Source of the DNA: Ascidiella aspersa | Taxonomy: Eukaryota | DNA length: 64,000 nt | Assembly (NCBI GenBank): GCA_963924565.1 | Contig: OZ004610.1 | Location: forward strand, 13,640,001 to 13,704,000 | Reading direction: 5' to 3' | Shown here: in pieces, positions 8,249 to 14,200 of the stretch | How the letters are laid out: each line of letters opens with the position of its first letter | Numbering within the stretch: the first letter of the stretch is position 1 | Program-made: the position numbers and the translations under genes | The notes under the pieces: generated by a model | What the model was told of the DNA's origin: nothing | The model's input: only the letters and a program-made list of their open reading frames with translations | Database searches by the model: none

Positions 8249-9170
8249 AATAGCTTACCCACAAAACCAAAGCAAAACCGGAATCATATCCCGTATGTGG
8301 ACCCATTCAGTGTACTGTGCAATTAGTGTTAACAGTTCCTCTTAATCCTTTTTTAACTTATTTCCACCTGTACACTTTTGGGTTTTAGCCTGCGCGGCCA
8401 TAGATACGCGAACTTGTGTTTATAGAATGGTAAAACGTGCACGGCACTTGCTTGAAAATGAAATGTGTTCCATGAGGTCGTTTTAAAGTTTTACTGTATC
8501 GTGCCTCATTGTCTGTTCCAAACCGCACTTCCAACCGCATTTTGTTCAATGTTTTTATCGTTTTGCTTTCACACTTTCAAATGATTGATTCACCTTCTCT
8601 ACATTGTTTGTTGCGTTATAAATTGTGTAGTTAACCGGAGTATTGTACATATTTTTGTGTTTTATTCGAAGACTATTTTAGGTGACCTTTCTATGTTCCC
8701 TTTTCCGCTTTGATACAGTTACTTTGCGTTATGCGTGTAGGTTAAAGTAGTTTCGTCTTTTGCGACTGCCCTGCGTTTATCAACGTCTGTATACGCAAGG
8801 TTATATTCTATCCCGTTTTTCTGTTTCGTAAATATAACATTCGTTGGTTATAGGGGATTAAATTAATAAATCCCAAGTCTCGTTTGCCAAATTGCTGCAC
8901 GACGTTACCTTCACTATTTCAATTACGTAATGCATGCCTTGCAAGTACTTTTAAAAGTTAAAATAAGCGTAACTTCAAACAACTTTCTATTTTCAAAATT
9001 TAAAATAATTAGACCTATTTATAACGTTTTTGTTTCGGTTAGGATAGGCTTGTTCTTTTGTTTGATTAAAATAAGCTTACACTTAGTACGTAAGTCGTCG
9101 GTGCTGCGTTTCGGAACATTTGCGCCTTCATTACTTTCCTTAATTCCGTATTCTATTATACCATCGGTTC

Positions 9171-9176: not shown

Positions 9177-9865
9177 ACAGGTTAATCGACGATTTGGATG
9201 CGTGTTCTTCTTCTGCAACAAAGTCGGAGCTGAACTTTAACTCATGACTACGGCGATTTTTGTCTTGAAAAAAAGAGAAATTTTGACCTAAAAAATAAAA
9301 ATTAAGACAAAATGTTGCATATTTAATTGTTTTGAAAAAATGTTGGCTTATCAGAAATATATTGATTTGAACAACGCAATGTTGTATGAAGTACTACATT
9401 AGTGCCTTGGTGTCTTCAGTTATTTGTTTTAGATGTTTCACTGACACCGGTCGAACACAATCACTTTTTTCTGGTTTATACAAACTCTTAAAAATATTTA
9501 GTTGATTTAAGTACATTTTTTGCAAAGCCTACAAATATTATTATAAAATGTACTTTTTAAGCTCGTATATTGGGGTAGGTTAACCACCAAGAAAGAGACC
9601 AAGTTCTTATAGGCCTACAGCATATATTCATTTTGCAAGGGTCACACATAACAAATTCGTGACGACTTGTACTGTGCAGTGATCACTTTACAAAAAAAAA
9701 ATAGCACGTGGCTTGGTCTAAGCCTGCAGCCCCGAGGTTTAGTTAAAAACATACGACTGTATAATTTAGACTCAATCTGAATAAACTTTCGCCTTTGTGC
9801 TAATCTTGGTTGTTGTGTTTTTGCGCTAATCTTGATTGGCTTTTTGGTTTATGGTTTTTTTTTAC

Positions 9866-9933
9866 CGGGCTCAGGGCCTCGGGTTTGTGTTGGTGACAGC
9901 TGCACCACCCGGGGAGGGGAGCATCATTGCCCG
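9866..9933 (-). ncRNA. Box C/D kink-turn-like structured RNA module at the 3' end of the retroelement
   Basis: Minus strand reads CGGGC-AAUGAUG...CUGA-GCCCG: 5-bp terminal stem, 3-nt bulge, tandem G-A pairs, U-U and G-C, plus inner stems CGGGU/ACCCG and GGUG/CACC. Confidence 0.5.
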
Positions 9934-10202
9934 TTGTTTTATTAAAGTTTTGCGAAAACAAAACAAAGAATACAAGTGAAAATTACAATGAAAAAAAAGG
10001 GAACTATACAAAGTTGCTTTGTTGAGTTTTGTCGAAAAACAAAACATAACAAACAATGCAAGAGATACTTACAATGGGAATGAGAAAAAAGAAAAAAGGG
10101 ATCCAAAGGTAGCAAGTTCTCTCTTGACGAACGAAGATGTCTTCATATAAACTGAAGAACCTGGAGGTGGCATCTTCGAACATCTGAAATGTAGAAAAGG
10201 CT

Positions 10203-11295
10203 CTAAAATGTAGACTCGTGCGCATACAGCTCGCATTGCAGCTTGCTGTAGAGCTGTTTCGACTCTATAAGACAGTCACATTGAGTTGACTGCTCCTTCA
10301 TGAGAGGGTTGAAATAGTTGCGGCATGTTCGGCAAAAGTACCCGGTGTAGTTACCACCCGCGGTCACTGTTTGGGCTTTGATTGCCGAAATCTCTAGGGT
10401 GTAGTCGACTAATCGACGCTTCGGTTTATGGGCTGGTGTTTTGGAGCTTCCTTCTGAAGTTGAGGATCTGTTCCTCTTCCCTTGTGGAGATGGGTCGCTG
10501 GAAGAGAATATATGAGAGGAATTACCGCTCGCGGAATCGATTCCAATGCCAATGGCATTGAGCGAGTTCTCAAAAGCATGGAACTCCATGAAAGCATCTT
10601 CCTCGAGCTGGGCCTCGAGGAAGTCATTTCGACACCGTGATCGGCGTTCCAGCGAGCAGTGGAGAGCCTCCTGGTAGTACCTCCATAGGAGGAAAATTCT
10701 CGTCGTTCAGAGGCGGTGGCTCTGACCTGACGAGTTGCTCTTTTTTTGTCTTTTTTCTTTGCCAGTTTTGGACACGACGGTATTTCGTGGCCCATCTCTT
10801 TGCAGTAGTTGCTAAAATTCGGCTGACCTTGGTAGAACACCGCTACCTTGTCTTCCCGAGTTTAACCATTTTCGGGATAGGATTATTCTCGATTTCTGAC
10901 CTTTTCAGCGTCATTTCTCTCTTGCCATTGGCACATTTATCATTATCCCGAAGGATTCTGACTTTCGAGCACTCGGCATATTTGAGAGTGAACCATCTCT
11001 TGATGGCATCGTTTCGCATTCGCGGCGGTACATATGACAGTTTTGCCTTTATTTGATCCTCATCAAATAGCTCGGCAAAACTGCATTCGGGCCTCGCCCG
11101 TAGTAGTGCTGTCAAGGCGGCAGCAGATTCTCTTTTAGTACAGGTGAAAGTGACATAGCCGTTCGGCTTTTGCACAATAGCTTCAAGGTGGTCGATCCAG
11201 TCTCTCATTGTCGGGTAGCTGGCAGTTGCAGGACGGTCTTCGAGAAGAGGGTCTACTTCATTGACAGCCTTTTTGGTGCCTTTGCTTGCAGCCAT
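10203..11295 (-). pseudogene. Frameshifted gag-like/ORF1p-like nucleic-acid-binding protein with zinc knuckle
   Basis: Three consecutive ORF pieces (11295-10843, 10840-10409, 10589-10203) can be joined by frameshifts. They contain VFYQGQPNF(S)NYCKEMGHEIPSCP, the YxGQPxxCxxCxxxGHxxxxC motif of L1/Tx1 ORF1p and ZCCHC3 with the first Cys changed to Ser, then a basic/Ser-rich linker and a Cys-rich C-terminus. Confidence 0.7.
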
Positions 11296-14200
11296 TTTGA
11301 CGGGAGGTTCTTCTGTGCTTTCGACGACGAAGAGTGCTTTTTGGTTTATGTTTTAGTTCGCTTGAGTTTATTTAATGTGTTTCATCGGGATTTCGCTGAA
11401 AAGTTAAAACGTTTGTTTATTTAAGCTATAGATGGGCGCATTTTTTCTTTATACGCGCGATTTGTTTTGCGAGCTCGACTCAAATTTGCTGAATGTATTT
11501 AACTCATTTTTTATGACGTGATTTTCCATCGTAATATTTTAAAGTTGGTATTTCACCTCTCAATCAAGCATCTTAAATCCATACCATGGTTTGTTGTATC
11601 AGGGGGCCGTACAAGAATCCGCCAAGCCCAAGGGGCGTTAATACAAAAAGGTGAACACTTGTCTACAAAAATAACATGCTTAGAATAGTAAATTGTAAAC
11701 TTAGCCTTACTGAAAAGGTATTTATGTGTCCGATGCACCAAGTCTATTTTCAAGGTAAGCCATAAGCTGCTGTACATGGAGAAAAAGGTTAATCACAAAA
11801 ATCAGCTTTTTGCACGGACTTAATGCTTGGATCTTGATGAACAAAATCGTATTCGACGGAGGCAACAGCTGTATATAGAAAAGTCTGATATACGTGATAG
11901 AAAGTCTCATAAACTTGATGTTTCAAAATGTTTATAATTTATGTTGCACAATTTTAGCTGAAAACAAAACATTTTTCGTATTGTTTTTTCACCATGTGCA
12001 ATAGACAATCGGCACCAGCTAAGTGACATCGCAAAATATTCCTCTACATCAGTGGTTCTAGTCTAAGTTAACACGGCGCAACATGCCATATTATATATTT
12101 ACAAACCCGCCTTTAGGCTAGAGTTTATTTTAAAGGCTAAAAAAACAAATACTTATTTACATAGTTAAACTTTGCTAAAAGTATATTTTGGGGAAGGGCG
12201 GGGCTTGGTAAACCTGTGCGGTGGCGGAATTAGCCAAAAATTTCAACAATTTTGAAATTGAACTAGTAAGAATATTTGGTTTAGCACACCGCCTATCAAT
12301 GCGGAAAAAGACAAGACACCCAGAGTACGCAAACTATAATGTAATAAATTGACACTGAAGCTGCTATACCTCACAGAGAAAAATCGACTTTATAAAAAAC
12401 ATAAGCATATAAAATAACTATTTATAACGAATATATAATGACACTATGATTAAAAGTCCGTTCGTCGCTTCCCGCCAGCGAGGCTCGTTACAACTCGACC
12501 TATATTTTATTTTATCCTTTCACGATGACAACGAAGCACACAAATCTGAGAGCCGATCGAAAGTCGTCGCTAAGCGTAACGATGTTTTGACCCGTTTCAT
12601 ACATAAAAAAAAACGCTTAGCCTTAACTTGCAGGTAATGCCTTGGTAATTTCAATTGCCGTGCTAACTCTTGGGTAATCTTGAGCGCTCAAAAGAACAAC
12701 TGATTGAGTTTTAACGCAATACTCTGTACCCCCTGGCTACGCCTATTACCCTCGGATGCACAATGAGCAAAAAACTGTTAGGCACACCAGCTTTAAAAAA
12801 ATACAGTACATTGTTTGTACGGCTATCACGTTAAACAAACATAAAAAAATAAAATATTACTAAATAGCTTCCGGCCCACTATAAATGGCTGACAGGCCCA
12901 TAGTTTACCGACCACTGTTCTACGTTCTACATTATCGAACAGCAGTCTTCATATGTTGCGTCCCTGTTGTTGTTGGCTGCATGTGGCAAGTTTGCTGGTG
13001 TAAATGTATTCCGGGCGATAAACGCGAAAAAGTGTGCACACGAAAGAGGCAGATGAAGGTGTGAGAAAACGTGAGAGAAAATAGAGATCCGTCCGGGGTG
13101 GCGGTTGCATTGGCTTTTTATTGGGCGAGGATCGAAGTGCCGATGTAACCTTTGGTCGAATTCACGAAAAAAAACAAGGAGACGTCGAAGGCCAGACACA
13201 AAATAAATGATCACGAAATGTGAGAAAGCTAAGTATTCCAACGGCTCGACAACGCCGTCACTTTGCTGACAAATCGTTGTTGCAGAGTAAGAAATAAAGC
13301 GTTGTGAAATAGCAACGTAATAAAGACATTTTTCTGTAACTCACACGTGTTAGGTGAAAGTTTACAACACGACCAGAAGCGAAAATGAAAAATAAAAATA
13401 CAGATAGCGAAATACCTGGTGATTCTGTGGTATACTAGAAGCACATTGGGATGTTATCTGCGGATGTCAAGGCACTGTGAAAAATACGAAAGATTCGGCA
13501 ATGAGGGTAAATAGCAAATGTTAAATGACTTTTTTGTTTAAATGCCATAAAAACGAAAACAAATCGTTACAAGTTTCACTTTTGAATTTCACTTTTATCA
13601 CATTTTCACAGCAAAAATTGAACGTAACAAAACACCTGACCGAAACCAAGCTTTCTTGGGTAAAACCGTGAAGCAAATTTTAAGCCGGTAAGAAAGCATT
13701 TAGAGAAGTAAATCACTTTATGTAAAGCAACAGTGGCCGTTTTTGTTATGACAGCACCGATTTTATAGACAAACAACTTGAAAGTTGACGTGCTCGGGGA
13801 ACGATTGCTTAAACAAAAAGAAAAACGAAAGAAAATAACGGCGACAAATCCACAAAAGGAAACACGCGTTTCAGACACGAAACAAGAAATAAACGATATT
13901 GCATTTTTAGCAAGCAGATAGTACGTTTTTCCATTTCACGTATCAAAGTGCACATGCGCGATTCGGTAACCGGCCAGCCGATCGAAAGCTCCAAAATGGG
14001 TTAAATTGGCTTTAGAGAATTCGAAACACGTGTTCGTATAATTTTTTGGGTGTGGCATGGATAGTAGTGACATAACATGTAAAATTCGTCGAATGGCAAT
14101 GGTGGGTTATCTATCGTGTATATTGCCGTTGTAGTGTAATCTCAAATACGGCAATGCGATGTTAAACAAAAGACGTGGCTGGACGAACAAAATCAACGGA

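Follow-up and report, generated by a model that had tools for sequence, protein, structure and literature searches.

A LINE tail resembling the snoRNA box C/D kink-turn in the genome of Ascidiella aspersa

Why should a retroelement in AT-rich DNA end in a short GC-rich island whose two ends read like those of a box C/D snoRNA? We addressed this question in a 64,000-nucleotide stretch of the Ascidiella aspersa genome (hereafter the window; contig OZ004610.1, positions 13,640,001 to 13,704,000), in which an earlier note, made from the sequence alone, had described a 68-nt island at 9866-9933 on the minus strand, located between the AATAAA and the A9 tail of a retroelement and folding into a canonical box C/D kink-turn. 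The observation held in all its particulars of sequence and position. On the minus strand, CGGGC (9933-9929) pairs with GCCCG (9870-9866) as the closing stem, and AAUGAUGC (9928-9921) comprises the 3-nt bulge AAU (9928-9926) followed by GA (9925-9924), U (9923) and G (9922), facing box D, CUGA (9874-9871), so that GA faces GA, U faces U and G faces C, which is the arrangement of the box C/D kink-turn in snoRNP structures. Box C reads AUGAUGC, matching RUGAUGA at 6 of 7 positions, and the inner stems CGGGU/ACCCG and GGUG/CACC, with loop CAGCUGU, are predicted at 9880-9911. The AATAAA signal lies at 9943-9938, 4 nt before the closing stem, and the module is followed by GT and nine A (9863-9855). 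The GC content of the module is 0.67, against about 0.35 around it. A scan of both strands of the window for R-UGAUG ... CUGA with a 5-bp Watson-Crick closing stem in the kink-turn register returned this site only, whereas first-order Markov random sequences made from the composition of the window (200 runs) gave 0.02 hits per 64 kb. The thermodynamic fold alone is not unusual (z = +0.46 against shuffles), and the case therefore rests on the motif, its position and its conservation in other copies, not on folding energy.

The module ends a 1.48-kb retroposed unit (9855-11335, minus strand) flanked by a perfect 15-bp target-site duplication, CATAAACCAAAAAGC (read on the minus strand), at 11336-11350 on the 5' side and 9839-9853 on the 3' side. 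The unit contains a short 5' UTR, a broken ORF1-like frame, a 3' UTR, the module and the A9 tail. The genome holds two close relatives in a head-to-tail array on contig 8 (contigs of the assembly are abbreviated below as C2 to C9), with homology running over window positions 9841-11306, as well as a degraded fourth copy. One of the contig-8 copies has an open frame of 507 aa, compared with which the window copy has two internal deletions of about 200 bp and a frameshift. Its N-terminal piece (10843-11295, minus strand, 150 aa) is 76% identical to residues 97-297 of the contig-8 ORF and gives a weak hit to the ZCCHC3 RNA-binding domain, and its C-terminal piece (10203-10589, minus strand, 128 aa), in another reading frame, is 86% identical to residues 369-507. 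The two 200-bp gaps could suggest a processed copy of an intron-bearing gene, but this was rejected because the extra segments on contig 8 are in-frame coding sequence and those copies also end in the module plus poly(A), with 30-40 A where the window copy has nine. The protein has no Pfam domain above threshold; nevertheless, it is 42% identical (E = 1.5e-53) to the ORF1 of LINE copies in the same genome and carries a CCHC knuckle. The unit is therefore an ORF1-only derivative of a LINE. In the contig-8 array (C8:18303000-18320999), which has a period of 3240 bp, each unit carries two different ORF1-like frames, one of 399-443 aa and, about 130 nt further on, the 507-aa one, with only one module plus poly(A) at the end of each unit and the next unit starting about 50 nt after the A run. 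The wider region (C8:18.26-18.51 Mb) is a dense nest of these LINEs and ORF1-only units, all on the plus strand, in which several 5'-truncated copies begin directly after the poly(A) of the previous element (for example, an A run followed by GGCTGTCAATGAAG), suggesting repeated insertion into A tails.

The earlier note had named as grounds for its own rejection a failure of other copies to conserve the boxes or the stem register, and we found that they do conserve them. All three full copies have the identical 68-mer, and the fourth has a 51-mer with three internal deletions that keep both boxes, the stem and a GGGUG/CACCC hairpin. An exact 17-base pattern made only of the ends (GGCAATGATG, 25-86 N, CTGAGCC) detected 45 sites in the genome and none in the reversed control, giving 37 distinct variants. 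Of these, six are a short form fused to a tRNA-like sequence, one looks like an ordinary AT-rich snoRNA, one is unclear, and the rest are retroelement tails of two classes. Class II, to which the window module belongs, reads AUGAUGCUCCCC ... CCCGAGG N2-4 CUGAGCCC, whereas class I reads AUGAUGAGCCCAAACCAAAGG - hairpin - CCCUGAGGUACCUGAGCCC and has the full box C, AUGAUGA. The two classes share the ends GGGCAAUGAUG...CUGAGCCC, but their interiors, and those of the four class II lineages, cannot be aligned, with lengths running from 51 to 87 nt and different hairpins at the same place; about 10 lineages share the ends in total. Given that these copies were found with the end pattern, the invariance of the boxes among the 45 hits is partly forced by construction; what is not forced is that internally unrelated tails exist with these very ends, at 45 hits against 0. 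The kink-turn register is exact in the window and in all 29 aligned variants, although the non-Watson-Crick geometry itself was not probed. The four GGGC/GCCC pairs are kept in nearly all of these variants (one G-U among 29), the outermost pair occurs as A-U, G-U or C-G, and in the class I hairpin one pair changes from U-A to C-G in five sequences. The named structure is paired in 86% of cells, against 32-53% when the partners are slid, so covariation is real but modest. RNAalifold proposed an alternative pairing of GGGC with the nearby GCCC in class I, which we rejected since it is absent in class II and is broken without compensation in several class I copies.

A covariance model built from 29 tails, which scores the window module at 46.3 bits (E = 5.9e-10) as the only hit in the window, gave 106 matches in the genome at E <= 0.01, with 150 candidates scored. 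Sixty of those missed by the exact pattern were read, and they are decayed or 5'-truncated class I copies with substitutions scattered over boxes, stem and interior alike. Inserted copies are therefore not under selection, and the module serves the element, not the host. One class I tail with two substitutions (GGGAC for GGGGC and GCTC for GCCC) lies at C4:13712892-13712969 (plus strand), 8.9 kb beyond the end of the window. At C7:25.38-25.77 Mb, C9:20376394, C2:23878218 and C8:26216104, a class I module cut off before box D is followed in every copy by the same sequence, AAAAAAATATGTAAAGAATAGTGTAAC, and a truncated tail has therefore become part of another repeat. The six tRNA-fused variants (loci L047, L052, L053, L057, L063 and L064; for example, L053 1498-1620) are a 45-48-nt form with the same ends (GGCAAUGAUG...CUGAGCC) followed by a tRNA-like sequence and a T run; the 3' stem strand, GCCUGU, doubles as the start of the acceptor arm, and ARAGORN calls a tRNA in one of the six. 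This form could be a snoRNA-tRNA dicistron or a SINE head. No tRNA-headed SINE partner was found in a search upstream of 12 tails.

Class II tails follow an ORF2 with endonuclease, RT and zf-RVT domains on C3, C5 and C8, and follow the ORF1-only element in the window and on C8. One such LINE locus (C3:27299-22757, minus strand) was read contiguously by joining three overlapping pieces of the genome as they stand, without a consensus or a mended frame being built for any element. It contains an ORF1 of about 500 aa with a weak zf-CCHC_2 hit (0.0085), an ORF2 with Exo_endo_phos (2e-18), RVT_1 (5.4e-12, only the C-terminal half of the profile) and zf-RVT (1.8e-8), a 3' UTR of about 250 nt, the module and poly(A). 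This copy has a frameshift and lacks the first RT motifs in the N-terminal part of the domain, so a working partner was not shown. A nearly identical copy lies at C5:17245-21685, both being within 17-27 kb of the starts of their contigs, and further copies lie at C5:86 kb and 171 kb from the end of C3; these may be subtelomeric duplications. Class I tails follow degenerate ORF2 C-termini with the same CxxC...H....C motif. The module is thus not particular to the short element but is the tail of a whole L1/Tx1-like LINE clade, a name that is approximate because no RT tree was made, and which agrees with the APE endonuclease, RT, C-terminal zinc-binding motif, CCHC-bearing ORF1, A tail and 15-bp duplication. 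Protein word searches with the ORF1 gave no hit, and those with the ORF2 C-terminus gave one hit at 30% identity, whose DNA was not examined. Two pattern scans of metagenomes gave 0 hits and 2 hits, the latter being bacterial chance matches, and thus no copy was found outside this genome; no other eukaryotic genome was searched, so conservation across species was not assessed. The tail is the most constrained part of the element. Between the window copy and contig-8 copy a, the ORF is 90.4% identical (pS 0.254, pN 0.049, pN/pS 0.20) and the variable 3' UTR is 85% identical with many indels, whereas the last 94 nt (9955-9862; TCGCAAAACTTTAATAAAACAA, the module, then GTAA), including the AAUAAA region, are 94/94 identical between the window copy and both contig-8 copies. 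At the neutral rates seen beside it, 14-24 differences would be expected in those 94 nt. The two lineages therefore diverged while both the ORF and, more strictly, the tail were under selection, and both insertions are young.

The layout around the module is regular. In 31 of the 33 retroelement-type tails, a poly(A)-signal-like hexamer ends 2-18 nt (median 11) before the conserved GGC of the module, and in 32 of them the A run starts a median of 4 nt after CUGAGCC, about 2-3 nt after the stem. The signal is thus about 85 nt from the tail in the linear sequence, too long for a normal poly(A) signal, and only if the module folds do the two come within the usual 10-30 nt. We infer that the closing stem also serves 3'-end formation by bringing AAUAAA near the cleavage site, in a manner similar to the HTLV-1 Rex element. 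One RNA run with the same species label, a paired long-RNA library of which 6% was read, had no reads on the module or on the rest of the element with one exception, and no small-RNA data were examined, which neither supports nor refutes a role for the module. The exception is that 88 reads match only a 60-nt stretch (11261-11323; the 5' UTR and first codons), with two fixed differences, and then continue into other sequence, indicating that a paralogue with the same 5' end is expressed. Reads also cover window 8500-9170 at a depth of 8-17, with the first mate on the minus strand, and stop near 9170, so that a transcribed region lies next to the element.

The module was also compared with the features of genuine box C/D snoRNAs. 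It has the boxes at its ends and the terminal stem in the kink-turn register, but Rfam searches of the region, of seven other tails and of the whole window gave only noise (ACEA_U3 at 16.6 bits, E = 2.4). Against one 9-kb rDNA unit, 18S to 28S, the best contiguous complementarity next to box D or the inner CUGA is 10 nt for the window module, which shuffled guides also reach, and the best targets differ between lineages; snRNAs were not included, and U14, sought as a positive control, was not found. (Thirteen full-length 18S genes are scattered over about 6 Mb of contig 5, at 8.8-14.5 Mb, in both orientations, with one adjacent pair spaced 7.5 kb apart.) The C-D'-C'-D order is absent: class I has a second CUGA 5 nt before box D that looks like a 9-nt duplication (CCUGAGGUA-CCUGAGCCC), which three copies lack, class II has CCGA there, and there is no C' box. 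Accumulation of a stable small RNA bound by Snu13, Nop56/58 and fibrillarin was not measured. A SECIS element, with its AUGA/GA quartet above an internal loop, apical AAR motif and in-frame UGA, was rejected because the closing stem abuts the bulge directly, as in C/D motifs, and the ORFs end in TAG or TAA with no in-frame UGA needed. A hammerhead reading of UGAUGAG was rejected because the invariant C before UGA and the GAAA strand are missing.

We therefore interpret the island as the 3'-terminal cis-acting RNA module of an L1/Tx1-like LINE clade, kept by an ORF1-only derivative, and consider it somewhat more likely than not (roughly 0.55) that it acts through a host-type kink-turn. The sequence data themselves establish the position of the module between a poly(A) signal and the poly(A) tail in nearly all tails, the retention of its ends (a 4-5-bp stem, AAUGAUG and CUGA) across lineages whose interiors cannot be aligned, the sharing of the tail class between RT-bearing LINE copies and the ORF1-only element, its standing as the most conserved part of the element, retroposition and the free decay of dead copies. 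The rest is inference, namely that in the element's RNA the ends form a C/D-type kink-turn (C-stem, bulge AAU, tandem G-A, U-U, G-C) closing a variable hairpin, that this is bound by a host L7Ae-family protein (Snu13/15.5K), possibly with further snoRNP proteins, and that the resulting particle fixes and protects the 3' end next to the poly(A) tail and marks the RNA for reverse transcription at the target, letting the ORF1-only element be copied in trans. There is no experimental evidence for a kink-turn or for protein binding, and box C has C at position 7 in the window's class. The interpretation in the earlier note, that the family may use a snoRNA-mimicking or captured C/D module for RNA stability, nucleolar routing or trans-recognition by an autonomous LINE, is thus supported only in part: the mimicry fits the conservation of boxes and register, the functional roles were not assayed, and the captured guide snoRNA version is not supported.

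The main competing possibility, which we rate lower and hold only tentatively, is that the conserved ends are read directly by the element's own ORF2p reverse transcriptase or ORF1p, as in stringent LINEs, the likeness to box C/D being convergent or incidental. The location at the extreme 3' end, the sharing of the tail class, conservation exceeding that of the ORF, and the letters conserved within a class outside the kink-turn core (GCUCCCC and CCCGAGG in class II, GCCCAAACCAAAGG and CCCUGAGGUAC in class I) speak for it, and these private letters could serve each class's own proteins. However, what survives between the classes is precisely the set of nucleotides that defines a C/D kink-turn (C-G next to the bulge, a 3-nt bulge ending in U, GA/GA, U-U and G-C) while everything else changes, and a private protein-RNA code would have no reason to match that consensus so exactly. 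It is unlikely that the module is only a spacing device for 3'-end formation; the spacing of hexamer, stem and A tail speaks for it, but a spacing stem would tolerate any paired sequence, whereas AAUGAUG and CUGA, unpaired in Watson-Crick terms, are the most conserved letters.

Less likely still is a genuine methylation-guide snoRNA picked up by a LINE and cut out of element transcripts to act on rRNA or snRNA. Its ends are like those of snoRNAs, and a 63-nt AT-rich candidate box C/D snoRNA at C7:31068875-31068931 (minus strand; locus L066 1498-1560) has the same ends as the LINE tails, GGGCAAUGAUGA...CUGAGCCC, together with an inner CUGA, no poly(A) and sub-threshold matches to SNORD20, SNORD50 and SNORD58 (21-24 bits); but in the module itself the absence of a family match, of complementarity above shuffles to the one rDNA unit compared and of a C' box, the variable and deletable hairpin where guides would sit, and the unconstrained decay of dead copies all speak against it, and point to a structural module and not a guide RNA. 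A chance resemblance in a GC-rich stretch, to which only the ordinary folding energy lends support, is already contradicted by the family data, given the expectation of 0.02 per window, the 45 hits against 0 and the fixed position before poly(A) in many lineages.

The nearest known system is the terminal motif of box C/D snoRNAs, bound by Snu13/15.5K/L7Ae, with which the module shares the stem, bulge and paired boxes at the very ends of a 51-87-nt segment; it differs in lacking the C'/D' pair in the usual order, an antisense guide and an Rfam match, and in being neither intronic nor a gene of its own but part of a polyadenylated retroelement RNA, with no evidence obtained for a free small RNA. 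The 3' tails of stringent LINEs shared with non-autonomous partners (eel UnaL2/UnaSINE1, R2, SART1) are likewise structured, located at the extreme 3' end and more conserved than the rest of the 3' UTR, but those are plain stem-loops or pseudoknots read by the element's RT, whereas here the conserved part matches a host snoRNP motif and precedes a poly(A) tail of the L1 type; a need for RT recognition was not assayed here. Mammalian HAL1 elements also keep an ORF1 without ORF2, with a poly(A) tail, a target-site duplication and, in the case described here, an ORF that evolved under purifying selection, but they belong to a different lineage in a different animal group, and here the window copy is broken and the contig-8 unit carries two ORF1-like frames. 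The H/ACA domain of vertebrate telomerase RNA is a snoRNA-type domain at the 3' end of an RNA serving a reverse transcriptase, used for stability, end formation and trafficking, but it is of the H/ACA class, belongs to a host RNA and is not followed by poly(A). In sno-lncRNAs and SPA RNAs, a snoRNP-type module at the end of a long RNA could block exonucleases, but these derive from real intronic snoRNAs of host genes, whereas this module is element-encoded and followed by poly(A). snoRTs (PMC1687206) are copies of real snoRNAs moved by LINEs and snoRTEs are snoRNA heads fused to an RTE tail, both with snoRNA-like sequence in retroposed DNA with A tails, while here the module is the LINE's own tail. 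None of these is a LINE whose own tail is a C/D-type kink-turn before poly(A), and no description of a C/D-like LINE tail was found in the literature searched, which leaves out most subscription journals.

A bolder possibility, which the data do not rule out but which we regard as doubtful, is that a whole LINE clade assembles a snoRNP-like cap (Snu13, perhaps with Nop58, Nop56 and fibrillarin) on the last 50-90 nt of its RNA, giving an exonuclease-proof 3' end and routing the RNA through the nucleolus or Cajal bodies before target-primed reverse transcription. This would be the C/D counterpart of the H/ACA domain of vertebrate telomerase RNA, and a handle by which ORF1-only elements hitch a ride. 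LINEs need either a poly(A) tail or a private 3' stem-loop for their RT, and a tail that copies the universal snoRNP assembly signal would be a third solution, hijacking a host RNP-assembly pathway for a mobile RNA. It would link retrotransposon biology with snoRNP biogenesis and offer a natural parallel to the snoRNA-like domain of telomerase RNA. In practical terms, the module is a compact marker for annotating this LINE clade and its non-autonomous derivatives in tunicate genomes.
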